From positions 1-64,000 of IMG/VR virus record IMGVR_UViG_3300005529_000001: DNA of 64,000 nucleotides; one strand, given 5' to 3'. The position numbers were made by a program, and so were the translations under genes. Position 1 is the stretch's first letter; each line of letters starts with the position of its first letter. Shown here piece after piece: positions 13,311-53,046 of this stretch. Below the pieces are notes generated by a model. That model was not told the DNA's origin. It was given only the letters and a program-made list of their open reading frames with translations, and searched no databases.

Positions 13311-13311
13311 G

Positions 13312-13650
13312 TCACATGCCGCCGCCCATTCCGTGGCGGCCGTTGTCGTTGTTGCTCTTGTTGTTGTAGTTCACCCCGCGTGCTTTGCCGTAGCTTGGCA
13401 CCGGGGGCTTGCTATCATCGAGATCGTCTTGGAGAGGCTTGTCTTCAGCGTCGTCTCGTGAGTTGGGACCCTTTGGCAACCGGAGGTTGCCCAGGTCAGT
13501 CGGGTGAGTGTCAGCCATCTTGTCGGGCACTCCATAGACGTGCTCGACCTTTTCTTTTGGCCAACCGTAGACTGCCTTTGCAGCCTCCCTGATTGTCTCA
13601 CGGAGCTCACCGAGACGGATCTTCACGTCTGTAAGTATCTCTGTCCCCAC
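13312..13650 (-). CDS. hypothetical protein with VKIRLGELRETIREA motif
   Basis: ORF fills gap between tRNAs; start overlaps tRNA-Phe 3' end. Confidence 0.55.
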   Translation of the reverse strand: MGTEILTDVKIRLGELRETIREAAKAVYGWPKEKVEHVYGVPDKMADTHPTDLGNLRLPKGPNSRDDAEDKPLQDDLDDSKPPVPSYGKARGVNYNNKSNNDNGRHGMGGGM

Positions 13651-13714
13651 GGCCGGACTCGAACCGGCACCTCCTGGGCTTCAACCAGGCGCTCGACCAT
13701 CGAGCTGCAAGGGG
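13641..13714 (-). tRNA. trnF: tRNA-Phe(GAA), acceptor mismatch
   Basis: CCTGG-TTGAAGC-CCAGG. Confidence 0.75.
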
Positions 13715-13788
13715 GTGGCCTGGGTCGGGATCGAACCGACATCTTACGGGTTTCAACCGTACGCTAAGACCACATCAGCTACCAGGCC
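13713..13788 (-). tRNA. trnF: tRNA-Phe(GAA)
   Basis: TACGG-TTGAAAC-CCGTA. Confidence 0.88.
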
Positions 13789-13797
13789 ATGTGTGGT

Positions 13798-13874
13798 TGG
13801 GGTGACCGGTGGGAATCGAACCCACGTTGACGCATTCACAGTGCGCCCTCTGAAGACCTCTCGAGTACGGCCAC
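13798..13874 (-). tRNA. trnH: tRNA-His(GTG), second copy
   Basis: CGCA-CTGTGAA-TGCG, G-1. Confidence 0.85.
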
Positions 13875-13950
13875 AGTCAGAGACCCCGGAATCGAACCGG
13901 GCCTGCGTCTGGCTCCAAACCAGCTAGGGCGCCTCCTCCCCATGTCTCTG
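13875..13950 (-). tRNA. trnP: tRNA-Pro(TGG), atypical D arm
   Basis: C1:G72, CTGG-TTTGGAG-CCAG. Confidence 0.65.
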
Positions 13951-14022
13951 GAGCTGGCGAAGGGATTCGAACCCTCACAGGCCTGCTTACGACGCAGGAG
14001 CCCACCGTTGGGCGACACCAGC
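13949..14022 (-). tRNA. trnT: tRNA-Thr(CGT)
   Basis: CCTGC-GTCGTAA-GCAGG. Confidence 0.88.
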
Positions 14023-14025
14023 AAT

Positions 14026-14142
14026 CACACGATCTGAGGACTCGAACCTCACCTCCCCTTGCATGCCGGGCAACCCGCCCATGTACGATTCGAACGTACC
14101 AACAACTAGACGGGGCACATGCACCAGCGCACCCATCGCGTG
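14026..14142 (-). ncRNA. tRNA-like RNA with two T-arms
   Basis: GTACG-TTCGAAT-CGTAC and TGAGG-TTCGAGT-CCTCA inside an 8-bp terminal helix. Confidence 0.65.
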
Positions 14143-14215
14143 GTCAGGGTGGTGGGACTCGAACCCACGGCCTCGTCCATCCGAGGGACGCCGTCTGCCA
14201 CTGACTTACACCCTG
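14141..14215 (-). tRNA. trnP: tRNA-Pro(CGG)
   Basis: CGTCC-CTCGGAT-GGACG. Confidence 0.9.
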
Positions 14216-14219
14216 AAAT

Positions 14220-14530
14220 CATCGACCGTCCGATCGCCTCGGCGAGGATATCACCCCTCACACCTGCTCACGTCAGTCACGTTGTTCCGTCACAAGGCTC
14301 AGCAGCTAGCTAGGCCGCCTCAACACCCTGGCGGGAGTTTACCCGCATGCGCTGTTGCTCTGATCGCCGTAAGGCAGCGCACCGTCTTTCCCCCGAATAA
14401 GGAACTGTCTGATCGGAGTACGGACGACGTTACGTTTCCGCGTGCATCGGACCTGACCAGCTCCCGTTGCCAGTGCCTTTCCCCGAGCCAGGGATGGGCT
14501 TTCAGCCACGTGACGGTAGGACGGTCGATG
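14220..14530 (-). ncRNA. unassigned ~310-nt structured RNA
   Basis: 12-bp perfect terminal helix CATCGACCGTCC/GGACGGTCGATG plus several internal helices and GNRA-type loops. Confidence 0.65.
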
Positions 14531-14607
14531 GTCAGCGTAAGAGGATTCGAACCTCCGACCTCGTGCACCCCAAGCACGCGCTCTAAACCAGGCTGAGCTA
14601 TACGCTG
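14529..14607 (-). tRNA. trnP: tRNA-Pro(GGG)
   Basis: CGTGC-TTGGGGT-GCACG. Confidence 0.93.
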
Positions 14608-14734
14608 ATACGTTCTTCACAGTCTCCACCTCAGTAGGCGTCAGCCAAACACCGTGAGGTGGGCCGCTCCAGACGCTTCTTCGGGTATTCCCTTAGAGAG
14701 GCGTCAAACCTGAGGAACGCAGAGTCTGTTTGTT

Positions 14735-14810
14735 TCGTGGGAAAGGAGGGACTCGGACCCTCGATCTTCTCCGTGTGAGAGAGCTGTTCTTGCCGCTGAA
14801 CTACATTCCC
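14735..14810 (-). tRNA. trnV: tRNA-Val(CAC)
   Basis: CTCT-CTCACAC-GGAG. Confidence 0.82.
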
Positions 14811-14833
14811 GAAGATTGAAGCCTCCTTGGCTT

Positions 14834-14910
14834 CCGTCGGAGCGGTCGGATTTGAACCGACAACATCTTGCACCCAAAGCAAGTGCACTACCGGATTGTG
14901 CTACGCTCCG
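14834..14910 (-). tRNA. trnP: tRNA-Pro(TGG)
   Basis: CTTGC-TTTGGGT-GCAAG. Confidence 0.92.
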
Positions 14911-15101
14911 TTTTTCTGTCTTCTGCCGGGCGTCTCTGCCGGCTTGCCGTTTTCAACCCCTATGGGGGCACGGCAATCGAAACGGCAGCACTCCTGTGGT
15001 AGACGTGAGGCCGCCGACGCTTGAGCGCCGTGGTTCACTTCTGCCTAATAGGATGCTCGACATCATGACGAATGATCTCGTTTCGTTTGTTCGGCTTTCG
15101 C

Positions 15102-15179
15102 CGGTGACCCTGGGGGGATTCGAACCCGCCATTTCCACCGTGAGAGGGTGGCTGCCTTAGCCGTTAGCAAGACAGGGCC
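15102..15179 (-). tRNA. trnE: tRNA-Glu(CTC)
   Basis: CCACC-CTCTCAC-GGTGG. Confidence 0.88.
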
Positions 15180-17301: not shown

Positions 17302-17696
17302 CAGGACTTGATTGCGAACACGCCTCGAGGCTGTTCAGTTTTGAATGGATCGCCGAACAAGCACAAGACCGCCTCAGCAAAGTGCCGGTGCACAAACTTG
17401 GCAAATTCGATGTGTTCGATGCCGTGACGTGTCAGGTTTGACCAAGCGAGCAACTGGATGATAGAGGGCTCTTTCTTGAACGACTCGATCAGGTTCGCCA
17501 TGTCAGTGCGTTTGGTTTGGTACGCTTCCTCGACCGTCTTGAACCAGAGCGAGACCGGGTCAGCGAAAACGGAGTACAAGTGCTCCTCTACCTCGTCATG
17601 CATTGAGTAGATCGATGAGATGTCGCGAAATTCCTCAGCGAGGAGTTGTTCCCGTGACATGCCCAAAACTTGTTCTTTTGTCAGCTTCATCGCCAT
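17301..17696 (-). CDS. hypothetical protein
   Basis: tiles after VWA gene. Confidence 0.6.
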   Translation of the reverse strand: MAMKLTKEQVLGMSREQLLAEEFRDISSIYSMHDEVEEHLYSVFADPVSLWFKTVEEAYQTKRTDMANLIESFKKEPSIIQLLAWSNLTRHGIEHIEFAKFVHRHFAEAVLCLFGDPFKTEQPRGVFAIKS

Positions 17697-19090
17697 GCCC
17701 CTCTGATGGTCTGTTCCTTTGACAGGAAGATCTGGATCTCGTCGGTATCAAACAACAGCTTGCAACCCTGGCCGAGGACCCAACCTCGCTTGACACGGCT
17801 GGGGATCGGCTTCTCCGCGCACCCATCGGTCATGATCAGCATGCCGTCCCAACGTCCCCTGTTCTTGGGATCATTGACGATGGCGGTGGGAGCTGAGAAG
17901 TTGGTCCCGCCGCTCTTGGTCCGATGCAACTTCGGCCGCATCCCCTTGCGCCACTCGTAGAGATCTTTGGGACCAGCGTAGCAGTCAAAGTGACACAGGG
18001 TGATGTCAACCTTGCGAGTCAGTTGGTCGAGCTCGTTGAAGAACATCTCACACATCTCATCGGAAACTGAACCCGATTCATCGATGGCGATGAACAGCTT
18101 GGCAGTGTACCCACGCTTGGTGCCCGGGTGGATGTACGGGTAGCGCTTGTTAATGCGCTTGATGCTGGTCGTCCGAGCGCCCCGGACGATGCTGCCGACG
18201 AACTGCCTCAGCACCGCTCGCCAGTTGATGACGGTGCTGATGTACTTCCGGATCTCAGCGCGGATCTCTTCCGGGATGTTGCCCCATCCGTCTGACTGAG
18301 AGTCAGCGTGACGGACAGCCTTCTCGATGATCCCCTTGACCTTGCCCTCGACGTACTCCCTGAGCTCGTCAGGGATGTCATCCCAACCGTCATGGTCGTC
18401 CATCGGACCGATGCCATAGACGATCTCGCCCTCGCTCCCGCCACCGTTCTTCTTGTTGTCGTCCATGAGCGCGTTGAAGTACCACTCGCTGGACTTCAGG
18501 GGCGGGAACGACTCGATGAGGTCACAACGCCGCAACGTCGCCGCCTTGGAACGATCATCCAACTCAGCGAAACGCTCCGGATCGATCCAGGGCTTGACGC
18601 CCGGGACCAGGCCCATCTTCGGGAGCGGACGTGCCACCTGGCCCGGCTCGAGGTCTCGCGGCGTGCCAGCGTTCTTGACAATGAGCGAGTTGATGGCGAG
18701 ATCGGTCCCCACGTTCCAGTCAACGGCGGGCGTCCGCCGGCGAGCATTGAGGTGCCCGCCCCACAGGTGATCGAACTCGTGATTGAGGACCCCACGAATC
18801 TCCCAGTTTGTCAGCGGCTCACAGGTGACATCCTTCTTACGATTCGCATCGTAGTAGGTGCCCCCGCCCATGAACTGGGGGTTGACCCACATGACGACCT
18901 CGTCGTTCCTTGGATCAAAGGTCACTGCTGCGGTCGGGATGTCATGCGTGAAACGCTTCTTGACGTAACGTGAGATCTCAGCATAGAATGGCACGTCCTG
19001 GAGATATGGGATCAGGTGCCGGCCCAAGTTGAAATCGCTGTCACAGTCACGGAACCCGTGCTGCCGCGTGGAGACGTTCTGTTCAGTCAT
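17687..19090 (-). CDS. metallopeptidase-like (DUF2201-like) plus VWA domain protein
   Basis: HEFDH (HExxH); AIDESGSVS MIDAS, SGGTNF, IMTDG. Confidence 0.88.
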   Translation of the reverse strand: MTEQNVSTRQHGFRDCDSDFNLGRHLIPYLQDVPFYAEISRYVKKRFTHDIPTAAVTFDPRNDEVVMWVNPQFMGGGTYYDANRKKDVTCEPLTNWEIRGVLNHEFDHLWGGHLNARRRTPAVDWNVGTDLAINSLIVKNAGTPRDLEPGQVARPLPKMGLVPGVKPWIDPERFAELDDRSKAATLRRCDLIESFPPLKSSEWYFNALMDDNKKNGGGSEGEIVYGIGPMDDHDGWDDIPDELREYVEGKVKGIIEKAVRHADSQSDGWGNIPEEIRAEIRKYISTVINWRAVLRQFVGSIVRGARTTSIKRINKRYPYIHPGTKRGYTAKLFIAIDESGSVSDEMCEMFFNELDQLTRKVDITLCHFDCYAGPKDLYEWRKGMRPKLHRTKSGGTNFSAPTAIVNDPKNRGRWDGMLIMTDGCAEKPIPSRVKRGWVLGQGCKLLFDTDEIQIFLSKEQTIRGAWR

Positions 19091-19227
19091 CGCCCGCGGG
19101 CCTTTCTCGGCATCCTTGGCGACGTCAGCCATCCACAGACCAGTGCGTGGCGTCCAGAGCATGAGTGGATCCTACCCCTTGGGGGTTGCGGGTTTCACCC
19201 GTCAGGCGACTCACAAACCAACGTGAA

Positions 19228-25770: not shown

Positions 25771-27201
25771 TCAGTCCTCGCTCTTGTCTCGGGAGACCGC
25801 GGCGATGCGTTCGGCTTGTTCGGCAACACTAAGGCTCTTCCACCACTTCCACGTGGCGGGCACCGACTTGTCAACGTCGGCGTTGTCACGGACCCGGGTG
25901 TAGACCGGGAACCGCATCTTGCCGTCCTTCGTCAGCCCGTCCTCAGTGAGGGGATCGGGCTGAGCTTCGCACTCGGCGTTCTTGCCATTCCAGCTGTCAG
26001 CGCCCTCGGCTTGGATCTGAGCGCGGAGAGCATCGTTGAAGCCTCCCCCCACCCGGGTGATGATCTTGTTGGGAAGGACGACGTAGAAACCACCGAACTG
26101 TCCTTCACGTTTGGTGCCCCGGCGGCCCTCGTAATTGCCGACGATGACGCCCTCGTAAGTGACGACCGGCTTCAGCTTCAGGATGTTCTTGGAACGCTTC
26201 CACTCGTAGGGGGTGTGCATCGTCTTTAGCATCACGCCCTCGTATCCCTCGTCCATGCACCTGGAGAAGTACTGTTTGAGGACGTCTTCCTGGAAAGCCA
26301 TGATGTAAGGAACCTGACGGATTGGTGACGTCTTTTCCTGCTCGAACTCGACACAGGCGAGGACAACCTCTCGGACGAGGTCGGCGCGCTCAGCGTAGGT
26401 CAGCTTCGTCTCCTGAGCTGCCCAGTCGGAGAACGGCATCGCGTCGAACACGTTGTAGTACATGTTCGAGTCGTCTTTCTGGTCTTCTTTGTGGACCCGG
26501 CCCGACATCATGACGCTGGATGACTCGTTCCAGTCAGCCGCCATCCCCTCACCGTCGAGGACGATATCATCGAGCTTCATCGCCTCTAACGTCGCGCGGA
26601 TGCGGGGGAGCGACGGGAGCTCGGTGCCGTTGCGGGTGAACAGAGTCACCTTGCCACCGCGCTTGATGGCGATCAAGCGCAAGCCATCAAGCTTCGGCTC
26701 GACACGGACGGGATACGTTACCTTCTCGAGGATCTTGATGCCTTCGCCCTTGACGAACTCGCTCTTCAACGTCTTGGCCAGAGCGACCTCGAAGCTCTTG
26801 ATGAGATCGGGCCACACTTCGTTGACAGTTGATTCCTGGACGCCGCAACGAAGATTTTTAAGAAGGATACGCTGGCACCACTTCTGTTGGACTTCCGTCG
26901 CGCCACTCATGAGCGTCACGACGTAATCCTTGGCTGCGTTTCCCGTCAGGGTTCGGGTCGCAAGCATGCCGGTTATGCCGTCAAGAAACCTCTCGAGAAC
27001 CCCATCATCGTTGAGAGGTTTGTTCGTCGGTTTTGGCATCTTGAACTTGGTGACGTAGTAGACCGTGTACGGGTCCTGGGCCGCGACGAACACCCTTTTC
27101 AGGAGTTCGTTCTTGCGAGCTGCTTCCAGGATGTCGATCTTGGCGAGCTTGCCTGAGGTGCTCTCGAGCTCTTCGAGGATGTCGATGACCGTTCGTGCCA
27201 T
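25771..27201 (-). CDS. lig: ATP-dependent DNA ligase
   Basis: EPKLDGLR, LDGE, VFD, EGVMLK, LKLKP, RFP motifs. Confidence 0.95.
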   Translation of the reverse strand: MARTVIDILEELESTSGKLAKIDILEAARKNELLKRVFVAAQDPYTVYYVTKFKMPKPTNKPLNDDGVLERFLDGITGMLATRTLTGNAAKDYVVTLMSGATEVQQKWCQRILLKNLRCGVQESTVNEVWPDLIKSFEVALAKTLKSEFVKGEGIKILEKVTYPVRVEPKLDGLRLIAIKRGGKVTLFTRNGTELPSLPRIRATLEAMKLDDIVLDGEGMAADWNESSSVMMSGRVHKEDQKDDSNMYYNVFDAMPFSDWAAQETKLTYAERADLVREVVLACVEFEQEKTSPIRQVPYIMAFQEDVLKQYFSRCMDEGYEGVMLKTMHTPYEWKRSKNILKLKPVVTYEGVIVGNYEGRRGTKREGQFGGFYVVLPNKIITRVGGGFNDALRAQIQAEGADSWNGKNAECEAQPDPLTEDGLTKDGKMRFPVYTRVRDNADVDKSVPATWKWWKSLSVAEQAERIAAVSRDKSED

Positions 27202-29927: not shown

Positions 29928-31136
29928 CTACTTCTTGGCCCCCTTGTCCTTGGCGGGTGCCTTGAAGATGCCGGGGATGTTCGGGATGATCCCGATCCCT
30001 GCCTCACCCATCGGGACGCCGAAGACATCGAGGATGTCCTTGGCACAGTACTTGTGGATGCTCTTGGCGAGCCCGATCTTGTCGATGCCGTGAGCTGTCA
30101 GCTTCGACCACAGCGAGATACGGTGCTCTTCGCCCAGCTCCCGCATGATGGCGGTGATGTTCTTGCCCTGCTGCTCGCTCAGCGTCTCCACGTTCTTGAA
30201 GACGTGGTCGCTGACCTTCTCGATGAGACCGTTGCGCTTCTCGTGCGACTGCTTGTCGAACTTGGCTTTGACTGAAGCGGTGTGGAAACGGTCGACCAGG
30301 TCCTCACCCGTTAGGTTGGTGTCGATGTTCTTGCAGTAGTCTCGGAACGCCGACGCTGCGTCGTTGCCGACGAAGACTCGGACGATGTTCCAGAAGCGGG
30401 GGTCGAGTGGCTTCTCGCTGAGTCCCGCAGCAACCAGCGACTCGTTGACAAACTCCCAACCGCGAGGGGATGGCTGCTGGGTGTTCGGGTCAGCGCCCTT
30501 GGCCGGGTACAGCCAGATGTCTCGCTGCTCGACGAAGTCCGGGATGAAGTAGTGGAGGTTACCACCCTGCTCGGGGTCAGTGTTCCGTGCCCAGCTGCAA
30601 AACTCGGCGGGGGTGACCATCAGGTCCACGACCGCCAGTCGTGACAGCAGCGCCGGATCGATCTCGTTGACCTGGTACTGGGCGCCGGTGTTGATCGCGG
30701 CGTAGACCCTCGACAACGGGTGAAGCTTGTGACCGTTGAGCTCGTGGTCCAGGACGATCTGGAACGAAGCTTGCATGACCTCGGTCGTGCCTCGGTTCAG
30801 CTCGTCGAGGAAGATGACGTGAGGCTCGTCACACGCCATCATGTACCAGTCAGGCGGGTTGAACCTGGTGACGCGGCCGTCGGTGCTGGGCAAGCCGATC
30901 AGGTCGCCCTCACTCATCTGGCCGAGGCGGCGGTCAATGACCTGGTAACCGCCCTCCTTGATGAGGCCTTGCTCGAGGAGCTGCTTGCGGATGATAGCGC
31001 TGACCTGCCTGACAGACTGGCTCTTGCCCCTGCCGTGGTCTGCGCGGAGAAGCACTGACCGTCTGGCGGGCAGCAAGGCTGCCGTCTCCTTGAAGGTCGT
31101 CATTGACATCGTCGTCTCGGAACCGGTGCTTGCCAT
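29928..31136 (-). CDS. MoxR-like AAA+ ATPase
   Basis: Walker A DHGRGKS, Walker B IFLDELNR, AAIN, DPALLSR, SPRGWE. Confidence 0.88.
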   Translation of the reverse strand: MASTGSETTMSMTTFKETAALLPARRSVLLRADHGRGKSQSVRQVSAIIRKQLLEQGLIKEGGYQVIDRRLGQMSEGDLIGLPSTDGRVTRFNPPDWYMMACDEPHVIFLDELNRGTTEVMQASFQIVLDHELNGHKLHPLSRVYAAINTGAQYQVNEIDPALLSRLAVVDLMVTPAEFCSWARNTDPEQGGNLHYFIPDFVEQRDIWLYPAKGADPNTQQPSPRGWEFVNESLVAAGLSEKPLDPRFWNIVRVFVGNDAASAFRDYCKNIDTNLTGEDLVDRFHTASVKAKFDKQSHEKRNGLIEKVSDHVFKNVETLSEQQGKNITAIMRELGEEHRISLWSKLTAHGIDKIGLAKSIHKYCAKDILDVFGVPMGEAGIGIIPNIPGIFKAPAKDKGAKK

Positions 31137-33358: not shown

Positions 33359-34174
33359 TCACGTGAGCCCCTTTCCGGATGCAACCCGTTTGACCTCATC
33401 CTCGGTGATGGGGTATGACTGCGAATCGGTCTGGTCTTCGACAAGACCGAACCGGAGCCTGAGGATCGCTGCTTCCTTCGCTGACAGCTCACAGATGACG
33501 CTCTTGACGATCTCGAGGAGTTGCTTCTCAGCAACGTTCTCGAAAGGATCGCAGCCTGGGCGGTCATCCTCGACCTTGTCCTCGATGGTGTCGCCCTCGC
33601 CGTTGGCACTGAGCGGTTGCTGGAGCGAGATGGTGCCACGGCCCGAGTGGATCGTTGCCTTGACAACAGTCTCGCTCGCGCCGATGATCTCCATCAGCTC
33701 CTCAGTCGTCGGCTCGGCCCCGTTCAGCTCGCGGTACTCTTCCGCAGCTTGCAACAGCTTGCGTTGCACCGTGACTGCATGAGCGGGAAGGCGGATGATC
33801 CGCTTGCGCTTCAGCACGTGCTGGCCGATGGCCTGCTTGATCCACCACGTTGCATAAGTCGAGAAGCGGAAACCTCGCTTCCAATCAAAGCGCTCGACTG
33901 CCTTCATCAGGCCGATGTTGCCCTCCTGCAAGAGGTCTTCCAGCGGGACCTGGCTGTTCTTGTACAGCTTGGCGATGGAGACAACCAGGCGCAGGTTGCA
34001 CTCAATGATCCGCTTGCGAGCCTTGTCAGAAGCGCCCTTGTCTTCGCCCTCAAACGTCTTGAAGAGCTCGACCACCTCTGGGTGTTTCAGCTGCGGGAAC
34101 GCGTGAAGCGCGTCCAGGTATGCGCCGACAACGTTCGTGTCGACGCCCTTTTCTTGGGTCTGCATCAGTTCCAC
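33359..34174 (-). CDS. RNA polymerase sigma-70 family factor
   Basis: NLRLVVSIAK, DLLQEGNIGLMKAVERFDWKRGFRFSTYATWWIKQAI, region 3-4 ILRLRFGL. Confidence 0.95.
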   Translation of the reverse strand: MELMQTQEKGVDTNVVGAYLDALHAFPQLKHPEVVELFKTFEGEDKGASDKARKRIIECNLRLVVSIAKLYKNSQVPLEDLLQEGNIGLMKAVERFDWKRGFRFSTYATWWIKQAIGQHVLKRKRIIRLPAHAVTVQRKLLQAAEEYRELNGAEPTTEELMEIIGASETVVKATIHSGRGTISLQQPLSANGEGDTIEDKVEDDRPGCDPFENVAEKQLLEIVKSVICELSAKEAAILRLRFGLVEDQTDSQSYPITEDEVKRVASGKGLT

Positions 34175-35611: not shown

Positions 35612-35685
35612 TGGTTGGGGCGGAGGGATTCGAACCCCCGTAAGCTGATTCAAAGTCAGCGGTCCTGCCGTTGGACGACACCCCA
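35612..35685 (-). tRNA. trnQ: tRNA-Gln(TTG)
   Basis: GCTGA-CTTTGAA-TCAGC. Confidence 0.93.
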
Positions 35686-35713
35686 ATAGAGAGTAACAAG
35701 CTGCGTTCCGTGT

Positions 35714-35785
35714 TGGTTGCTCCGACTGGACTCGAACCAGTGGCCCCCGCTCCATGGTAACGGGTGTCCGCCGATATGCGGAGCA
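35714..35785 (-). tRNA. atypical tRNA-like RNA, reduced D arm, CAT centred in loop
   Basis: 7-bp acceptor plus ACCA, canonical T arm, CCCGTT-ACCATGG-AGCGGG. Confidence 0.55.
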
Positions 35786-35787
35786 AT

Positions 35788-35883
35788 GCGTCATGTCGAA
35801 CGGAATCGAACCGTTGCCCGGGTAGCAGCCGCGAGCCTTCACAGGATTCTGTGTTTTTCCCAGTGCTTTCCTCGAACGACATG
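35788..35883 (-). ncRNA. tRNA-like RNA with 4-nt anticodon loop
   Basis: CATGTCG/CGACATG acceptor, CACAG-AATC-CTGTG, T arm AACGG-TTCGATT-CCGTT. Confidence 0.55.
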
Positions 35884-35886
35884 ACT

Positions 35887-35961
35887 TGGCAGGGGCGCAG
35901 GGACTCGAACCCTGGTAGCGAGTTTTGGAGGCTCGCGTCCTAGCCGCTGAACGACACCCCT
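35887..35961 (-). tRNA. trnW: tRNA-Trp(CCA)
   Basis: loop CTCCAAA, G73, C.A mismatch at 31-39. Confidence 0.85.
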
Positions 35962-36053
35962 GTAAAAAGCGCTGGTACATGGGACAACTTGCGTTGATCA
36001 GACGTATTGGTTGTTAGTCAGTCTTCCGACAACACTCACCATGTTTGCCAGCT

Positions 36054-36130
36054 ACGGCACCGTCGACGGGAATCGAACCCGCATTTCCTGGTAGACAGCC
36101 AAGCGACCTAATCCATTGATCGACGACGGT
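36054..36130 (-). tRNA. trnD: tRNA-Asp(GTC)
   Basis: CTTGG-CTGTCTA-CCAGG (U37). Confidence 0.85.
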
Positions 36131-36213
36131 ATTGTATCGCTGTGAGAAGCTACCAACTCCTCGCGAGGCGGTGGGGCTCCCTTGCGCTGGGCGCCCATGT
36201 TACCTTGCAGCGA

Positions 36214-36287
36214 TGGCGGTCCCGAGGAGAATCGAACTCCCGTAATACGCTAGACAGGCGTACGTCCTACCACTGAACGACGAGACC
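36214..36287 (-). tRNA. trnD: tRNA-Asp(GTC), second copy
   Basis: TACGC-CTGTCTA-GCGTA (U37), GCCA. Confidence 0.88.
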
Positions 36288-36375
36288 ATTGGCTCCTCGT
36301 TTACCTCGGCGCTTGCCGCGCGTTCTGGTGTACAGACCATGTTGGCATGGTATCGGACCTGGACTTGTTCCGGAG

Positions 36376-36447
36376 TGGAGCTCACGGGATTTGAACCCGT
36401 AACTTCCAGCTTGCAAAGCTGGCACTCTCCCGTTGAGTTAGAGCCCC
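36376..36447 (-). tRNA. trnA: tRNA-Ala(TGC)
   Basis: G3:U70, CCAGC-TTTGCAA-GCTGG. Confidence 0.92.
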
Positions 36448-36448
36448 G

Positions 36449-36530
36449 TGGAGCAGGAGGGGATCGGACCCTCAATCACGCAGCCTCCGCTGGCGAGCGG
36501 CCTTACCGAGTGACCATCCATTGCTGCCCC
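36449..36530 (-). ncRNA. Ala-acceptor tRNA-like RNA with aberrant anticodon arm
   Basis: GGGGCAG/CTGCTCC-A (G3:U70); CCGCT-CGCC-AGCGG. Confidence 0.55.
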
Positions 36531-36609
36531 GTTGCAGCGTCGGTGGGTTACGTAGCAAATTGCATTCTATAGACGAGGAACTTCAATGATAGAATTGCCA
36601 CCGAGCCTA

Positions 36610-36652
36610 GCACTTCACCTTCTTGTCGGTCCTCTGCGACTGGTTACCGTGC
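36610..36652 (-). ncRNA. AGUA/GAA module copy J (minimal, GGUA variant)
   Basis: GCAC-GGUA-ACC...GUCG/CGAC...GGU-GAA-GUGC. Confidence 0.6.
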
Positions 36653-36654
36653 AG

Positions 36655-36727
36655 TGGAGCACGCGGGACTCGAACCCGCCACCTCAACGTTGCGAACGTT
36701 GCGCTCTCCCAGATGAGCTAGTGCCCC
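36655..36727 (-). tRNA. trnA: tRNA-Ala(CGC)
   Basis: CAACG-TTCGCAA-CGTTG. Confidence 0.92.
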
Positions 36728-36780
36728 GAAAACTCCGGCATGGTGACTGCTCTCGCAGACGATCCCGGAGGGATTATGGT

Positions 36781-36856
36781 TGGCAGCGGGGGATGGAGTT
36801 GGACCACCATTTCCAAGCCTTAGACGCCTGGCGACTTGCTGTTAGTCGACCCCGCT
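36781..36856 (-). tRNA. atypical tRNA with CUA (amber) anticodon, 6-bp anticodon stem
   Basis: CCAGGC-GTCTAAG-GCTTGG; G73-CCA; D loop lacks GG; T loop TCCAACT. Confidence 0.55.
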
Positions 36857-36857
36857 G

Positions 36858-36930
36858 TGGAGCTAGCGGGATTCGAACCCGCCACCTTCTGCATGCCATG
36901 CAGACGCTCTCCCAAATGAGCTATAGCCCC
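36858..36930 (-). tRNA. trnA: tRNA-Ala(GGC)
   Basis: TCTGC-ATGGCAT-GCAGA. Confidence 0.92.
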
Positions 36931-37055
36931 GTGTGCCGGCGGTTACTCTGAGTCTTCACCTTCAGGTTTGCAGCAAAGCACGATGAAACACGCACGCTGT
37001 GTGAATGCATATCGTAGTTGGTCGCTGGTCCTCCTATCCGCGCCGGCGGATCGGA

Positions 37056-37131
37056 TGGTGATCCTGGTGGGACTCGAACCCACGAGTTTCTGCGAGTCAT
37101 GCAGACGATCTGGCCGCTGATCTACAGGATC
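37056..37131 (-). tRNA. trnV: tRNA-Val(GAC), second copy
   Basis: TCTGC-ATGACTC-GCAGA (U37). Confidence 0.85.
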
Positions 37132-37371
37132 GTGGCCGGTCTCTCCCGGCGGTCATAGCGGACGATGTGGTCCGCACGTTTTGTCTTTACCTTTCCTTCC
37201 GCTTGTTGCGGTACTGCCGTCGCCAACAGGGCCGGCACATGTATGCCATCCCCGCGAGCTGTGCAGCGATTTGACACCACTTACACATTCCGCGCCTCCT
37301 TTCGTATGAACGAAAGTGGCTACGGAGGTCTTGAATGATCCATGCAGTGACACCTCTTGTTTGGCAAGGTT

Positions 37372-37449
37372 TGGTTGCGGACACCAGGAGTCGAACCTAG
37401 CTGTTGCTGGGTTATGGGCCCAGCGTGTAAGCCGTTTCACTCGTCCGCA
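37372..37449 (-). tRNA. initiator-like tRNA-fMet(CAT)
   Basis: three G-C pairs CTGGG-CCCATAA-CCCAG; U1:A72; ACCA. Confidence 0.75.
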
Positions 37450-37523
37450 GTGGGTCCGGAGGGCAATGATCCCACACGCTTCCGGTTAAAAGCCGGCTGC
37501 TCTGCCAATTGAGCTACGGACCC
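37449..37523 (-). tRNA. trnK: tRNA-Lys(TTT), atypical T loop
   Basis: CCGG-CTTTTAA-CCGG; T loop ATCATTG. Confidence 0.8.
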
Positions 37524-37529
37524 GTATTA

Positions 37530-37636
37530 CATCGTTCACCTGCCAGGATTCGAACCTCCATGTCCGGCTTGAAAGGCCAGCATCCTACCATTAGATGACG
37601 AGACCTTGCGATCTCGGGGTAAGTGGTTACTTGATG
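37530..37636 (-). ncRNA. AGUA/GAA module copy L carrying a tRNA-Glu(TTC)-like body without 3' acceptor strand
   Basis: CAUC-A-AGUA-ACC...GGU-GAA-C-GAUG; CTGGC-CTTTCAA-GCCGG; GGTTCGAATCC; GCAA hairpin. Confidence 0.75.
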
Positions 37637-37708
37637 GAGCCCAAGGCTGGAGTTGAACCAACGACCTCCCGGTTATTTACCGGTTGCTCTACACTGAGCT
37701 ACTTGGGC
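37635..37708 (-). tRNA. atypical tRNA: Thr-like acceptor, AAT-centred loop
   Basis: GCCCAAG/CTTGGGC-TCCA; loop TAAATAA. Confidence 0.55.
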
Positions 37709-37709
37709 A

Positions 37710-37781
37710 TGGTGGAAAGGGCTGGACTCGTCCAGCACTTCCGGGTCAAGAACCCGGCGCTCTGCATTGAGCTACCTCTCC
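37710..37781 (-). tRNA. trnK: tRNA-Lys(CTT), 6-nt T loop
   Basis: CCGGG-TTCTTGA-CCCGG; GCTGG-ACGAGT-CCAGC. Confidence 0.6.
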
Positions 37782-37811
37782 GTGCTTGAATTCTATACAT
37801 CGCCGGGCGTC

Positions 37812-37876
37812 GCCTGTTCACCTACACCAGATTCATAGTCTGGGTAACCGCGCTTCCGCGGCATGGGTTACTGGGC
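37812..37876 (-). ncRNA. AGUA/GAA module copy M
   Basis: GCC-C-AGUA-ACC...GGU-GAA-CA-GGC; hairpins CCGCG/CGCGG and CCAGA/TCTGG. Confidence 0.68.
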
Positions 37877-37883
37877 TTCGCAG

Positions 37884-37956
37884 CCTCTCTGTCCGGACTC
37901 GAACCGGAAGTCTCTACCTTCGCAGGGTAGCATGTTTTCCATTACACCACAGAGAG
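37884..37956 (-). tRNA. trnR: tRNA-Arg(GCG)
   Basis: CTACC-CTGCGAA-GGTAG; CTCTCTG/CAGAGAG acceptor. Confidence 0.75.
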
Positions 37957-38370
37957 ATAATCGTTGAAATATTTGATGCCCTTTCGCTGGCCGTTCTTGG
38001 GTGGATCAAATCGAAGTGAGAAGCTTGTTGTGTGACCCTCGATCTCACTCATCGACACATATGCTACGACCTTTCGATCGATGACATACAGTGCCATGTA
38101 GTCGATGTTTCGTGTTGTATATCGCAACCCGCTGCGACGGTTCGTGAAGTGTGACAGGCAGACCGTCCCTTTCTTGGATGATTTCACTGTCTTCGCTTGA
38201 AGTTTGACAACTTGATTTTCTTTCACAGCGATGATGTCAATGTGACTGACGTCGCCATAGGGAAAGAAGACATCGTAACCTTGGTTCACTAGATCACTTG
38301 CAATTGCAAGTTCTCCTACGTTGCCTGTTGCTTTGGTGACCGACAGCATGATGCTATCGTAACGTGTCAT
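37942..38370 (-). CDS. PD-(D/E)XK endonuclease
   Basis: GELAIASDL...PYGD...DIIA...KLQAKT; Y...IDYMALY. Confidence 0.82.
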   Translation of the reverse strand: MTRYDSIMLSVTKATGNVGELAIASDLVNQGYDVFFPYGDVSHIDIIAVKENQVVKLQAKTVKSSKKGTVCLSHFTNRRSGLRYTTRNIDYMALYVIDRKVVAYVSMSEIEGHTTSFSLRFDPPKNGQRKGIKYFNDYLSVV

Positions 38371-38374
38371 CGTT

Positions 38375-38497
38375 GGACGTTCACATTCACGCTTCACTGG
38401 CGTCCCTGCACCGTGCATCTAGGGGAATGTACGCGCCGAAACGCAGTCCCCCAGGTGGGAATTGAACCCACTCAAGTTTGAGCAGTTACTTGTCACG
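38375..38497 (-). ncRNA. AGUA/GAA module copy N (ACUG/CAGU) carrying a circularly permuted tRNA-like domain
   Basis: order: T-arm GTGGG-TTCAATT-CCCAC, closed 7-bp acceptor CTGGGGG/CCCCTAG, short D-like hairpin. Confidence 0.65.
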
Positions 38498-38499
38498 AC

Positions 38500-38576
38500 G
38501 AGTGGGTCCAGTGGGAGTCGAACCCACATCTCTCTGCTTAAGAGGCAGGACTCTGAGCCAGTTGAGTTATGGACCC
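38500..38576 (-). tRNA. trnK: tRNA-Lys(CTT)
   Basis: CTGC-CTCTTAA-GCAG. Confidence 0.9.
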
Positions 38577-38628
38577 TTTGGCCAGGTGATGTCTGCTGAG
38601 AACGAGCGCCTGGCACGCTGCCGTCTCA

Positions 38629-38704
38629 TGGTTGGGGTGGCAGGACTCGAACCTGCGTATCGTAGGGTCAGAACCTACTGCTGTTGCCACTGAGCCACAC
38701 CCCA
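38629..38704 (-). tRNA. trnQ: tRNA-Gln(CTG)
   Basis: GTAGG-TTCTGAC-CCTAC. Confidence 0.9.
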
Positions 38705-38705
38705 G

Positions 38706-38778
38706 CTGCTCGAGCAGGGATCGAACCTGCGATGGGCTAGTTAACAGCTAGCTGCCTTACCAACTTGGCTATCGAGCA
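38706..38778 (-). tRNA. trnN: tRNA-Asn(GTT)
   Basis: GCTAG-CTGTTAA-CTAGC, G73. Confidence 0.9.
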
Positions 38779-38779
38779 A

Positions 38780-38840
38780 TGGCGGTGACGGTCGCTTCGG
38801 CTAGGCCCAGATTCGGGCTGTCGGTCCACGAACAGTCACC
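38780..38840 (-). ncRNA. miniature cloverleaf ending in GCCA
   Basis: GGTGAC/GTCACC-GCCA with internal hairpins, no T-loop consensus. Confidence 0.45.
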
Positions 38841-38842
38841 AG

Positions 38843-38913
38843 CTCCAGCGGAGGGAATCGAACCCCCGTCGTCTCGGGAAACAGCCGAGCGCACGCCATC
38901 GTGCTCCACTGGA
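38843..38913 (-). tRNA. trnN: tRNA-Asn(GTT), U37/C38
   Basis: CTCGG-CTGTTTC-CCGAG, G73. Confidence 0.78.
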
Positions 38914-38962
38914 AAACGGAACGCAGATTGTCAAAGATCAACTGAAAGCTTGCGCTGTCAGT

Positions 38963-39048
38963 CGGTGCGGCGTCAGGGAGTCGAACCCCGCGGGCCAAAA
39001 GGCACCTGGGTTACAGCCAGGTCCATCTCCGTAGTGGTCTACCACCGC
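38963..39048 (-). tRNA. trnY: tRNA-Tyr(GTA)
   Basis: CCTGG-CTGTAAC-CCAGG, long variable arm. Confidence 0.85.
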
Positions 39049-39260
39049 ATGTTATGTCGTGTGCTTAAACGTCGTTTGCCGAGGAACTTTCTCTTCCTCG
39101 GCAACTCTGAGTGGCTTCTCTTACCCCTCTTCATCGCTCCGGAAGCTCGGAGCAATGGGCGCTCCGATCAAATCGTGGTCTTATCGTTGGCATATGCCTG
39201 CCAACGCTTCTGATTCGCTTTGTTGATTTGGGCTTGGGTATTCATGATCGTCTTTCGACT

Positions 39261-39338
39261 TCGTCGGACCGAGTGGAATTGAACCACCGACCTCCTGCTT
39301 ATCAGACAAGCGCTCTAAACCAACTGAGCTACGGTCCG
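39261..39338 (-). tRNA. trnI: tRNA-Ile(GAT)
   Basis: CTTGT-CTGATAA-GCAGG. Confidence 0.92.
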
Positions 39339-48850: not shown

Positions 48851-49849
48851 TCACACCAAGGCGTTCATGCGCTGGACAGCGAGCTGCAACAGGTTGTTTT
48901 CAACACCGAGGTTGATTCGTATCCGACTTGCATCGCCAAATGCTGACCCAGGCGGGATAGTGACCATCGCTTTATCGGGGTCGAATTTTGAGCCTGGCTT
49001 GAACCAGCCAAACATGCCGTGTTGGGCCATGTCGCTAGTATCCAGCACGTCGGGGTGCAGCGTTCGTATCAGCCTCTTGTTTTCATCAAGGAACCGTCTT
49101 GCCGTGTTGTGAAACGTATCAACATCGCTTGGGTGTTTCTTCTCGTGTTCAATGATGTTTGCCAACACGTCTTGCGATAGGAGCGACACACCCACTGTGG
49201 ACGCTTCGACATACTCACCCGCAAATTTCGCGATACGCTCATCATCAGTGACGATCCACCCGCACCTGAGTCCGCTGAGCCCGTACATCTTGCTGGAGCT
49301 GTAGATCGTGGTGCCCGCCAACTCAGTAATAGCATCTAGATAAACGGGTGTGTGATACGCTGCGTCATGGACGAGGAATGTCCCAAGCTTGGAACACTTC
49401 TTTCTGAGTTCAAGCGCTTCGTCGATCGATGTCAGGCGGCCATCGGGATTGTTTGGCGAGACGATCAGGTATGATGTTCCCCATGTCGGCTCGTCTTTAA
49501 GGACCAAACCCAGTCCTCCGAGCCGGATCGCTTCGGGCATCTGCGACCAGTAGGGCGTTCGCATTGCGATGTGGGTCTGGCCCAGCTTCCGGAGCGCGTA
49601 AAAGACAGCTAGCAACCCCTGCTTTGCCCCAGAAGTGACGATCACGTGTTGGCCGTATCGCTCTTCCAACAACATCACGAGGCGCTGGCTACCCTCGGGT
49701 GCTTGGTAATCGCAATCGCAAATAATGTTATCCAGGTTGAACAGTTCAGGCGGGTACGCAACCTGGAGCGCGTGACGGATGACATGGGCTTCGCCAACTG
49801 TCAGATCGATCCACCCGGGCGGGAGCTTTTTCCTGATGAGCGGGTCCAC
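48851..49849 (-). CDS. PLP-dependent aminotransferase, class I/II
   Basis: SGAKQGL, SPNNPDG, HDAAY, SSSKMYGLSGLRCG. Confidence 0.88.
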   Translation of the reverse strand: MDPLIRKKLPPGWIDLTVGEAHVIRHALQVAYPPELFNLDNIICDCDYQAPEGSQRLVMLLEERYGQHVIVTSGAKQGLLAVFYALRKLGQTHIAMRTPYWSQMPEAIRLGGLGLVLKDEPTWGTSYLIVSPNNPDGRLTSIDEALELRKKCSKLGTFLVHDAAYHTPVYLDAITELAGTTIYSSSKMYGLSGLRCGWIVTDDERIAKFAGEYVEASTVGVSLLSQDVLANIIEHEKKHPSDVDTFHNTARRFLDENKRLIRTLHPDVLDTSDMAQHGMFGWFKPGSKFDPDKAMVTIPPGSAFGDASRIRINLGVENNLLQLAVQRMNALV

Positions 49850-50242
49850 GATCCAAAACTACTCCGCTTCACCGGTTCAGGTTATTGACAATCTCGCCGA
49901 CAAGCTCGGCGGGCTCAATTTCTACCGTCAAGTGCTGCACCTCGACATTGAACACATCTCGGCACATGCCCATCTCATAGCCGAGGTCATGGATTTTGCG
50001 TGCGTGGAGCATGTCGTTGATGTTGTCCTGCAATTCGCTGATCATGTCGGGCGGAAATCGCGACAAGTCTAAACGATCGAGCCGTTCGTCAATCTCCCGA
50101 CGAGTCGCGTCGATCATACCATCAACAGAAGCAAACGCTCGAGCTGAGGTGCCCTCGATCAATTCGCCTTCGTATCCAGTCTCAATGCCCCGGATAACCA
50201 AGAGGTAGACGTACGCCATGGCACCATCATACTCCGTCCCAA

Positions 50243-50974
50243 TTAGCGCGCGAGCTCTTTCCACCGGGTCTCAAGAAATCGAGCGTAAGGCAATCCCGCG
50301 AGACCGTAAGAGCCAACAGCGTACGCGTCTGTCGCCTCGACCAGCAACGTCTCACCCTGCGCGGTGACGCCCATGTCGAGGCAGAACGCAGCATTCATCT
50401 TGCCCTTGCAACACTTGAGTGCTTTGTTATAGGTGCTCTTGTTGAGCGAGGTGAACGCGTCACCGCGGTAGTGCCGGACGCCGACGGGCTGGTCGTGCTT
50501 GAAGAAGCAACGGTATTCGCTCACAAACTCGATCTCATCGCTGACAAAGCAGGGAGTCTCTTCCGGGTATGCAGCAACCGCAAGCCTCGATCGCGGGTCA
50601 AGCGGATCAAAGACGAAACCCCCGAACAGCTTCTGTTGGACGGGCTTGACGAACTTGCGAGCGACAAGGCTCCTGACTCCTGCCAACGTCATGCGCTCGA
50701 TCTTCCGTCCCAACATCCAGTCGAGGTGTTCGGGATAATCAACGGGTGTTGGCACCGGTTTGCCTAGCAACTTCAATGCATCCCAGACGTCACCCAGGTT
50801 GCCGCAGACGATGACACTCGGGCCGAGGTCAGGCATGTTCTCAAGGTTCAGGTCACCGAACCCGTAGAACGGGACCACAGGGATCCCCTGGATGTGGAAG
50901 CCCTCGGCCGCAGCATAGGTGTTGGCGTTGTCCGGGATGTTCTCACGGAAACGGATGTAAGCCTTGTCAAGCAT
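50243..50974 (-). CDS. ATP-grasp domain protein (DUF4343/R2K-like)
   Basis: FVKP..QKLF, SEYRCF, LDMG, LLVE. Confidence 0.8.
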   Translation of the reverse strand: MLDKAYIRFRENIPDNANTYAAAEGFHIQGIPVVPFYGFGDLNLENMPDLGPSVIVCGNLGDVWDALKLLGKPVPTPVDYPEHLDWMLGRKIERMTLAGVRSLVARKFVKPVQQKLFGGFVFDPLDPRSRLAVAAYPEETPCFVSDEIEFVSEYRCFFKHDQPVGVRHYRGDAFTSLNKSTYNKALKCCKGKMNAAFCLDMGVTAQGETLLVEATDAYAVGSYGLAGLPYARFLETRWKELAR

Positions 50975-51887
50975 TTGCGTGCTGCTCCACGAGCTTCAAA
51001 CCCTCAGCGACATAGTAATCAACAGGCTGGTCTTTCTGAAGGAGACCCGCCTTCATCATCTCTTCCAACTCGTCTCTGACCGCGTTGCACCACGACCCAG
51101 GTTTGGTCGCCACCTTCGACAAGATGATTCCCATCGTGCCCTTCGGCAGCTTGGGCGAGTTGTCATCAGCGTAGACCTGCTTGACCCTGACTTCTAGTTC
51201 AGCAGCACGAGCGAGTGCCCGAGCGCGCTTGTCAGGACGCTTGGTCGTCAGGTCAGCGCGGGACAGCGCCATCAGCCTCTCAAAGTTGCGGACGTCACCG
51301 ATGTCGACGAGCAGTCTCCTGACCCCTGAGTCACCCCACGACTTCTTGTAAGCCGCGGGTCGGAGGTGGTTCAGCACCAGAGCCCTGACGGTCGTGAACA
51401 AGCTGTGGTCGTTTCTGAACAGGTCAAGCCGGTGATCGATGCGATCCAACATCCTTGCCCCGACAACGTCATGCTGGTGGAACGTCACCCGACCATTGAC
51501 GAATGCACGCGTCCGAGCCTTGCCGATGTCATGCATCAACGCGCCCCATCGCAGTTCAAGCTGAGGTGGCACCCCAGCGACGACCTGCTTGGTGTGATCC
51601 CAAACGTCCTTGTGAAGTGCCGAACGCGGGTCTTCACCCAAACCCTTCATCTCCCCGATCTCGGGGAATAACGCTTCGAGACAGCCCGTCTTCAGCAACA
51701 GCTCAAGCCCATCAGCTGGGCGTGAGCCGCAGAGGATCTGATCAAGGAGCTTGCGGACGGTCAGCGGGTTGCGACGCCACAGGTCTTCGAACTCACCGGG
51801 AGAAAAGACTCGTGGGACAAACAAATCATCAGGAGCGCCCGTGTTGGAGCCCCTAACACACAACTCTAGGAGTTCGATCGGATCCAT
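50967..51887 (-). CDS. HD-domain protein resembling the C-terminal half of CCA-adding enzyme
   Basis: L...G.L..LFPE, HKDVWDHT, ALMHDIGK, F..H..VGA, NHLR, VRRL, LSRAD; no N-terminal DxD head. Confidence 0.85.
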   Translation of the reverse strand: MDPIELLELCVRGSNTGAPDDLFVPRVFSPGEFEDLWRRNPLTVRKLLDQILCGSRPADGLELLLKTGCLEALFPEIGEMKGLGEDPRSALHKDVWDHTKQVVAGVPPQLELRWGALMHDIGKARTRAFVNGRVTFHQHDVVGARMLDRIDHRLDLFRNDHSLFTTVRALVLNHLRPAAYKKSWGDSGVRRLLVDIGDVRNFERLMALSRADLTTKRPDKRARALARAAELEVRVKQVYADDNSPKLPKGTMGIILSKVATKPGSWCNAVRDELEEMMKAGLLQKDQPVDYYVAEGLKLVEQHANA

Positions 51888-53046
51888 GACCTGCTTATCG
51901 TATCACAACCACGAATCTGTTTTCACGGGTTGAGGTGATGCACGTCACCCTTGACCGTGTTCGCTGGGCACTGCCGAGACAACCCTTGGACGTGCCAGAT
52001 GTTGTCTTGGCCCAAGTACCAGCAATATAGGTCATCACGGATGTAACGAGGCTCGGGAGCGTAGGGATTGTGAACGCAGCCCGCGAGCAGGAGAAGACAA
52101 ATGACACGTTTCATGTCATGAACTCTATCCTAGCTCAGAATGTCGTTCACCCTTCTTTTCGTGCTCAAACGGGCGCCATGGCATCCAGACGCGGATGACT
52201 GCCAGAGCAATGAGACAGACGAAAAACAGCTGCCAGACATCAAGGTTGTAAGAAACGCCCCAGACCTTGAAAGCGTGTTCGATCGTAAAACATGCGGCGA
52301 CGAGCACGCTTATCCGAGCGAGCCAGACGAATGCATGGTACAGAGCCCAAGCGATCACGTGACGGGTGACCCCTTGGGCAAACCCTCACCGTCTGGAAAC
52401 AGCACGTGCATCAATGCGACCGTATCACGGACCAGCTCGCTGTCGAAGTGTGCCAAGCCCGTCGTGGGATCAAAGCTCACGATAGCTTTGGGCCAGTCGC
52501 TTGGGTAGGGTGCTGCCCACAGCACGCACAGCCTCGTTAGCAAGCCAAACGCTTGGCCACGCTTGGCCACGTTCCCGTTGAGCTCATCATCACAGATCTT
52601 GTTGAGCAAGTTGACGAGCGGGACGACCTCGGGTGGGAAGATGGGAACACGAGGGTTCTTGGGTGGCTTTTGATCTTTCTTTCCCATGGGAGCGCTCTGG
52701 ATTGCGATACGACGTTGCTCGCTCTTACAAATAGCGACTTGTTTTGATTTCACGTCGTGACCTTGACGCGGCGTTTTCCCAACCGCTTCTTGACATCATA
52801 CATCGTGTCGATGACGAGCTCCCTGTTCTCAGCAAGTCGCCTGACGATGTCTTGTGAGTTCAGCAGCTCGTGGACCTGCAGGACCGCAGTCAGGCTTGGG
52901 TCATTGAGGATAGCCTTGAGCTGATCCTCCGCTTCGACCAACTTGACCGCAGCAAGCATGAGCTTAGCATGGACGTCAACGCAATCAGCGAAAGGAGCAA
53001 CTTTGGCCATGCTCGGATTGTAAGCACGCCATCGCAGCCTTTGCAC

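Follow-up and report, generated by a model that had tools for sequence, protein, structure and literature searches.

The first 64,000 nucleotides of IMG/VR virus record IMGVR_UViG_3300005529_000001, the stretch that we refer to as the window, encode a 306-residue protein of the class II CCA-adding enzyme family that keeps a neck remnant, an HD/HDIG body and a helical tail and has no catalytic head. Its active-site residues are invariant across the family members that we aligned, the family is widespread in metagenomic phage sequences, and the protein co-occurs with a separate CCA-type enzyme that carries a head and no HD motif. We tentatively propose that it is a free-standing phosphohydrolase that docks on tRNA and performs in trans the cleaning of 3' ends that Escherichia coli Cca has in cis, and that it descends, as its sequence suggests, from an HD-bearing class II CCA-adding enzyme after loss of the head.

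Domain architecture of the headless HD protein

The HD protein matches Pfam HD over residues 111-193 (2.7e-9; 37.8 bits against a cut-off of 22), the HDIG model TIGR00277 (42.7 bits against 27.6) and, exactly at the cut-off of 22.0 bits, the neck model PolyA_pol_RNAbd over residues 48-77 (1.3e-4). By its ligands and these curated cut-offs it is a member of the HDIG-type metal-dependent phosphohydrolase superfamily, with hydrolysis as its predicted activity. The match to the actinobacterial CCA-enzyme model TIGR02692 (2.5e-41) covers only profile positions 210-410 of 466, and the PHROGs profile named 'tRNA nucleotidyltransferase' is likewise matched only in its C-terminal part; the protein scores far below the CCA equivalog cut-offs (141.8 versus 438.8 bits for TIGR02692 and 32.5 versus 451 for NF008137). 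The head domain PF01743 has no match in the protein, and a six-frame search for it across the whole 369,475-bp genome found a sole place at 179 kb and none near 52 kb, which rules out a split or frameshifted head upstream of the HD open reading frame (ORF).

An AlphaFold2 model built with 25 homologues (predicted local distance difference test, pLDDT, 91.7; predicted template modelling score 0.83) found its best Foldseek match in the Aquifex aeolicus CC-adding enzyme (3WFO-3WFS; E 3.5e-6, template modelling score 0.55-0.57). In a second structural alignment, model residues 1-243 superposed on residues 181-447 of 3WFQ (Z 19.9, root-mean-square deviation 3.1 Å over 217 residues, 24% identity), and the human, Arabidopsis, Bacillus and Thermotoga CCA enzymes followed with Z scores of 9.6-11.5. 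The sequence match to 3WFO (4e-14) extends to residue 497 of that structure. Because the superposition begins at about residue 181 of 3WFQ, the phage protein starts where the neck of the class II enzymes starts and spans the HD body and tail, so that profiles, alignment and model together confirm what a preliminary description of this DNA had read from its letters, namely that the ORF has the body, tail and HD motifs of class II CCA enzymes without the catalytic head.

Table 1. Features of the headless HD protein and of the RNA-related genes discussed in the text (positions in the record, of which the window is the first 64 kb)
Feature	Position	Strand	Details
Headless CCA-enzyme-family HD(IG) protein, 306 aa	50967-51887	-	ATG start; neck remnant, HD body and tail
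Residues 1-91, neck-like helices	51615-51887	-	Family alignment; model residue 1 falls at about residue 180 of 3WFQ
Residues 92-216, HD/HDIG catalytic body	51240-51614	-	Family alignment; H98, H119-D120, H139, H174, D212
Residues 217-306, helical C-terminal tail with LPKG-x-MG	50970-51239	-	Alignment, 3WFO match and structure superposition
R2K-clade ATP-grasp gene, 243 aa	50243-50974	-	PF18299, 1.5e-29; 8-nt overlap of its start with the HD gene end
HD-less class II CCA-type enzyme, 391 aa (outside the window)	178686-179861	-	Head 5e-33, RNA-binding neck 6.8e-10
RNA-repair cluster: RNA ligase, Pnkp, RlaP (outside the window)	208029-213663		Fatty-acid-hydroxylase-like ORF in between
tRNA array 1	765-15179	-	35 tRNA genes
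tRNA array 2	35612-39338	-	20 tRNA genes
Minimal Pol-beta-type nucleotidyltransferase, 117 aa	11523-11876	-	Between tRNA-Leu(gag) and tRNA-Leu(cag)
Rnl2-like RNA ligase, 290 aa	21832-22704	-	PF09414, phrog_548; lysine motif EKIHG at K29

Conservation of the HD site and the tail

A word search retrieved 1020 metagenomic relatives of the HD protein, the best 120 of which are all 299-327 aa long and 54-84% identical, many of them on phage contigs of 200-370 kb. We aligned 25 family members, all of which open with an MDPIE-like N-terminus, and this shared start, together with the size of the family and its constant length, rules out a pseudogene or truncation artefact. Invariant in the alignment are H98, H119-D120, H139-D140, H174 and D212, the residues K123 and T126-R127, and the tail motif LPKG-x-MG, which is thus as conserved as the active site. 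The ligands H98, H119, D120, H139 and D212 are also invariant across all the groups sampled, whether phage headless, Myxococcota headless, or full-length viral and cellular, and to judge by this comparison they are under the same constraint as in the fused CCA enzymes. In genuine CCA enzymes, the neck motif EDxxR selects the nucleotide, CTP or ATP. Here it is present as E34-D35-x-x-R38; family-wide it has decayed, leaving W37 as the only invariant position of the neck motif, as would be expected because the transferase is gone. The constraint on the HD ligands, which is that of active fused enzymes, and the conserved tail are what lead us to read the protein as a tRNA-docking phosphohydrolase, with residues 217-306 as the presumed part that docks on the tRNA elbow, by analogy with the tails of its relatives.

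A separate HD-less CCA-type enzyme and a repair cassette

The single head domain at 179 kb belongs to a 391-aa enzyme that has motif A, RRD and EDxxR but lacks an HD motif, and whose best match is the CCA tRNA nucleotidyltransferase model PRK13299 (1e-54, below the equivalog cut-off). The same pairing recurs in relatives of this genome (G000): a headless HD protein together with an orthologous head-bearing enzyme of 377-379 aa is encoded both in G002 (340 kb, 99% complete) and in G008 (216 kb, 63% complete). The orthologues in the three genomes (377-391 aa, 42-48% identical to one another) all have GGxVRD..DxD, RRD and EDxxR without an HD motif, so that each of the three large genomes checked pairs a headless HD protein with a separate HD-less head-bearing enzyme. 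A complex prediction for the HD protein with the 391-aa enzyme scored 0.00, which bears neither way on binding.

Encoded CCA is missing from about 32 of the 58 tRNA genes of the genome by a crude end check, in rough agreement with the preliminary description, which had noticed that many tRNAs lack it. Since this is more than half of the phage tRNA genes, a phage CCA-type enzyme would be needed in any case. The genome additionally encodes a cluster made up of an RNA ligase (267 aa; PF09414, 8.5e-33), a T4-like Pnkp (330 aa; an AAA_33 kinase and a HAD_PNKP phosphatase, 4.5e-40) and an RlaP nucleotidyltransferase (353 aa; 2.8e-17), the canonical healing, sealing and refilling set of jumbo phages (PMC7824862). 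Jumbo phages have been reported with redundant RNA-repair options, HD-like phosphatases among them, and ligase duplication is common in these phages (PMC7824862).

Two further small HD proteins occur in the genome. One, a RelA/SpoT-type HD_4 hydrolase that resembles small alarmone hydrolases (335590-336216, plus strand), lies just upstream of two tRNA-like genes (336639-336792, plus strand), in both of which ARAGORN reads a four-base anticodon, ttca.

Cellular relatives and the origin of the headless form

With one genome per prokaryote species scanned, the nearest cellular relatives of the HD protein were found in Myxococcota, mostly Polyangiales, at 35-44% identity. The ORFs of these relatives are headless and mostly about 305-350 aa long (296-324 aa for the named Polyangiales proteins), and a motif search of every headless ORF, phage or Myxococcota, found no GGxVRD..DxD. 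The remaining cellular matches, from Bacteroidota, one actinobacterium and others at no more than 39% identity, are head-bearing enzymes of about 470 aa. Among IMG/VR contigs, the headless form is present on 9 and fused head-bearing HD enzymes are present on about 40 others, including jumbo-phage contigs that carry fused HD-bearing enzymes of 470-500 aa. On five IMG/VR contigs (L029, L034, L044, L052 and L058), an HD-bearing CCA-type enzyme forms the C-terminus of open frames of 850-1900 aa, which may be fusions with other domains or artefacts of ORF calling.

We placed these sequences in a quick-search maximum-likelihood tree of 63 rows, built on the region that they share; the rows were gathered with two peptide patterns, so that cellular enzymes are sampled with a bias. 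The phage headless proteins and the Myxococcota headless proteins each form a clade (SH-like approximate likelihood ratio test, SH-aLRT, 99 and 94), and these meet on a long branch (SH-aLRT 98, length 0.98) that is separate from the full-length enzymes. A single loss of the head would therefore suffice for both, and since the two clades are reciprocally monophyletic, any transfer between them would be old.

In Sorangium, Chondromyces, Polyangium and Minicystis the Myxococcota gene is chromosomal and conserved, and the relatives listed for a Polyangium query are 71-97% identical to it; no conserved neighbours of the Myxococcota homologues were found. The kinship with Polyangiales hints weakly at the origin of the gene, or at the host of an uncultured jumbo-phage clade. 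As a host clue the 391-aa CCA-type enzyme is uninformative, showing only a generic head similarity of 37-44% to Polyangiales paralogues.

Neighbourhood of the HD gene and setting of the window

The HD gene is flanked by R2K ATP-grasp, aminotransferase-like and unknown genes and lies 29 kb from the Rnl2-like ligase of the window. The R2K neighbour is present beside the gene of an 84%-identical relative and not beside that of a 57%-identical one; downstream of it follow a 131-aa protein of unknown function (49869-50264, minus strand) and a class I/II aminotransferase-like, specifically alliinase-like, gene (48851-49849, minus strand), and the three may form a small module for amino-acid or peptide modification. 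Directly upstream of the HD gene are two small ORFs (51923-52114 and 52125-52358, both on the minus strand), one with a lipoprotein-like signal (LLLAGC) and one hydrophobic and membrane-like. The second of them has a homologue in relative L002 at 31% identity, and the first has no match in relatives L002 or L003. A scan of 49.5-54 kb for promoters and terminators yielded no more sites than shuffled sequence.

The record as a whole (369,475 bp, with direct terminal repeats and rated complete) is the genome of a jumbo phage. The G+C content is 54-63%. The window holds 55 of the tRNA genes, in two minus-strand arrays. A megablast search of the locus against a phage collection gave 0 matches, a close relative being absent there, and tblastn against the same collection matched the HD protein only partially, at less than 40% identity, to full-length enzymes.

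The second array includes a tRNA with a CTA anticodon (an amber suppressor, labelled Pyl by ARAGORN; 36781-36856, minus strand) and a 94-nt tRNA-like gene with an unreadable anticodon (35714-35807, minus strand). Stop codons in ORFs of at least 150 aa are TGA in 211 cases, TAG in 31 and TAA in 22, from which the phage seems to use the standard code. Amid the tRNA genes of the first array is a short release-factor-like ORF (8929-9519, minus strand) that is 83% identical to an ORF of relative L014 (6132-6716) with PCRF and RF-1 matches; such a truncated release factor beside a suppressor tRNA may be relevant to the way in which this phage terminates translation. Between the two arrays, all on the minus strand, are genes for a DUF2201-like metallopeptidase (17687-19162), an ATP-dependent DNA ligase (25771-27201), an AAA_5 (MoxR-like) ATPase (29928-31136) and a sigma-70 family factor (33359-34174).

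Proposed function and competing explanations

If the HD protein is a stand-alone tRNA-docking phosphohydrolase, its tail would bind a tRNA, the HD site would hydrolyse blocking phosphates at the 3' end (2',3'-cyclic, 2'- or 3'-phosphate) to leave a 3'-OH, and the separate HD-less CCA-type enzyme would then rebuild CCA. We infer its catalytic activity, its action on tRNA 3' ends and its cooperation with the CCA enzyme from these features and from what is known of the fused enzymes. Phosphatase, 2',3'-cyclic phosphodiesterase and 2'-nucleotidase activities have been measured for the HD domain of E. coli Cca (Yakunin 2004, as cited in PMC10673834), the Mycobacterium tuberculosis CCA enzyme hydrolyses p-nitrophenyl phosphate (pNPP) and loses this activity in the H298A mutant (PMC10673834), and both the CCA-enzyme tail and the module of the GlyRS beta subunit stack on the tRNA elbow (PMC10164559).

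Several points weigh against this proposal. The family is known from its sequences and predicted structure, and its activity is accordingly putative. The neighbours of the HD gene are not conserved, and the gene is unlinked to that of the CCA-type enzyme, at a distance of 128 kb. Nor does the pair look like the two halves of one gene: BLASTP of the HD protein against the 391-aa enzyme found no significant similarity, the former groups with HD-bearing lineages and the latter best matches PRK13299, and we reject recent fission of one phage gene on these grounds. Each of five Polyangiales genomes with the headless protein has at least two head-bearing paralogues, some with the HDxGK motif, so that in some Polyangiales the headless copy is an extra beside a fused HDxGK paralogue and not a complement. 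Finally, the T4-like Pnkp encoded by this phage has a HAD 3'-phosphatase, and a second end-healing enzyme is therefore not strictly needed; the HD function may be redundant, or it may be specialised for acceptor ends as opposed to breaks in the anticodon loop.

To our knowledge, the HD activities of CCA enzymes have been measured on nucleotides and pNPP and not on tRNA ends, a further point against the proposal and one that suits an unlikely alternative, in which the protein hydrolyses small molecules (2',3'-cyclic nucleoside monophosphates, nucleotides or signalling nucleotides) and takes no part in tRNA repair, its CCA-like neck and tail serving as a scaffold or regulatory part. HD enzymes are versatile, and our model also resembles PhnZ, phosphodiesterases, SAMHD1 and PgpH (Z 7.7-9). 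This alternative has difficulty with the tail, which with its LPKG-x-MG motif is conserved to the same degree as the active site, and with the fact that the closest relatives are, by a wide margin, tRNA enzymes, in a genome heavily invested in tRNA with 58 tRNA genes.

A narrower and rather improbable version of the docking phosphohydrolase would make it a dedicated eraser of tRNA 3' ends, in which the tail docks on the elbow while the HD site strips blocking groups, such as the cyclic phosphate that HEPN- or HepT-like 3'-end nucleases leave or the pyrophosphate of toxSAS-type toxins. Were this the case, the phage protein would be a counter-defence enzyme and its Polyangiales counterpart a tRNA quality-control enzyme, and the long-unexplained HD activity of CCA enzymes would gain a defined physiological substrate. 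We consider it slightly less probable still that the phage protein serves counter-defence as such, removing groups that host toxins add to, or leave at, tRNA 3' ends (cyclic phosphate after cleavage by HEPN/HepT-type 3'-end nucleases, pyrophosphate from toxSAS/CapRel-type enzymes). The structural evidence for this role is the same as for general 3'-end cleaning, and a jumbo phage with several RNA-repair genes, of a kind for which redundant repair options are reported (PMC7824862), would be a fitting bearer; on the other hand, conservation of the sister family on Polyangiales chromosomes points to housekeeping and not to conflict, and for toxSAS the separate HD_4 hydrolase at 335.6 kb is the better candidate.

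The preliminary description had assembled the HD protein, the 117-aa nucleotidyltransferase of the first tRNA array and the Rnl2-like ligase at 21.8 kb into one split tRNA end-repair system, with the mini-nucleotidyltransferase replacing the missing head. All three genes exist as described, and the separation of phosphohydrolase and nucleotidyltransferase functions onto different polypeptides stands; the two proposed partners find no support, and the system in that form is very improbable. The full HD-less CCA-type enzyme and the canonical Rnl-Pnkp-RlaP cassette, both encoded beyond 64 kb, speak against it, as do the distances of 10-40 kb among the three genes and their unrelated neighbours.

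The mini-nucleotidyltransferase keeps the GS...DxD motif that had been noticed in it (G42-S43 and D55-x-D57 are conserved; a third carboxylate is not obvious), and in relative L014 it again lies between tRNA-Leu(gag) and tRNA-Leu(cag), both points in favour of the split system. Its family, in contrast, numbers 23 homologues, mostly of 114-120 aa and phage-like where they sit on long contigs (up to 154 kb), against the more than 1000 of the HD family; to judge by these sizes, the HD protein is probably common in genomes without the mini-nucleotidyltransferase. Its matches to Polbeta, NTP_transf_2 and MntA are all weak and below curated cut-offs; the MntA equivalog NF047752 gives 21.5 bits where its cut-off is 60, with the GSx(n)DxD motif present, and its language-model neighbours are generic NTP_transf_2 clusters. 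The folds nearest its model (pLDDT 91.7) are 2RFF, AadA and MntA, of the MNT/ANT type, with weak Foldseek E values of about 0.02-0.2, and CCA heads reach a match probability of only 0.12-0.20. A search of the genome for HepT (PF01934), confined to this one HEPN family, found nothing at E<=1; with no HepT and with tRNA-Leu genes on either side, the gene is not part of a classical toxin-antitoxin pair. It may be an orphan MntA-like antitoxin aimed at HepT toxins of the host. We regard it as a generic minimal nucleotidyltransferase that nothing links with the HD protein.

The ligase at 21.8 kb is Rnl2-like, as had been proposed, by PF09414 (2.6e-15; 57.4 bits against 27), by phrog_548 (2.1e-25) and by its lysine motif, with a score below the Rnl2 equivalog cut-off (TIGR02307, 43.2 against 197, in the C-terminal part). 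Its neighbours are genes other than RNA-repair genes (DUF3307, FGE-sulfatase-like, and those for the ATP-dependent DNA ligase, AAA_5 ATPase and sigma factor named above). With the ligase of the repair cluster it brings the clear RNA ligases of the genome to two; PF09414 has a third match, at 167 kb, that is below the cut-off.

Least probable of all is that the protein is catalytically silent, either a tRNA-binding or chaperone protein in the manner of GlyRS beta, in which a CCA-like body and tail and an HD-like domain do no more than hold tRNA (PMC10164559), or a decaying remnant: the HD-like domain of GlyRS has lost the catalytic His and Asp (PMC10164559) whereas every metal ligand is invariant here, and a remnant is ruled out by more than 1000 full-length relatives and the identity levels among the best 120 of them.

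Significance and comparison with known systems

Phosphohydrolase activity of the HD domain of CCA enzymes has been measured since 2004, and its physiological role is unsettled; in a fused enzyme it is hard to separate from CCA addition. The headless family offers a natural separation of function, with a free-standing HD body and tail in more than 1000 metagenomic phage sequences and on Polyangiales chromosomes, and makes the question of the HD role directly testable with one small, soluble-looking protein. What emerges for tRNA maintenance in this phage is a layered toolkit of 58 tRNA genes, a CCA-type enzyme, two RNA ligases, Pnkp, RlaP and the HD protein, and not a three-gene split system.

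The headless family is already in databases under generic names, the Myxococcota protein appearing at NCBI as 'HD domain-containing protein', 'HDIG domain-containing metalloprotein', 'metal-dependent phosphohydrolase' and once as 'tRNA nucleotidyltransferase'. In the searchable literature, of which coverage is partial, we found no description of a headless CCA-HD protein, which is not proof of novelty.

Among characterised enzymes, E. coli Cca (NF008137) and M. tuberculosis Rv3907c share with the phage protein the HDIG-type HD body, the metal ligands, the neck and the tail; the phage protein differs in having neither head nor nucleotidyltransferase, in the decay of EDxxR across its family and in scoring far below the equivalog cut-offs. 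The A. aeolicus CC-adding enzyme (3WFO-3WFS) is the best match in both sequence and structure over neck, HD body and tail, whereas the phage protein begins at the equivalent of about its residue 180 and lacks the whole head. The Polyangiales HD/HDIG metalloprotein is headless like the phage protein, has the same HD ligands and forms the sister clade, but it is encoded by a cellular chromosomal gene and differs at positions that include D140, P177, K249 and M252. The T4 Pnkp and Rnl pathway removes 3'-terminal phosphates from broken tRNA, as proposed here for the HD protein, and this phage has its own copy at 208-214 kb; the phosphatase fold is HAD there and HD here, and the HD protein has no kinase and is unlinked to a ligase. 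The GlyRS beta subunit, finally, is a headless CCA-like module that works outside CCA addition and contacts the tRNA elbow with its tail (PMC10164559), but its HD-like domain is without the catalytic residues that are intact in the phage protein.

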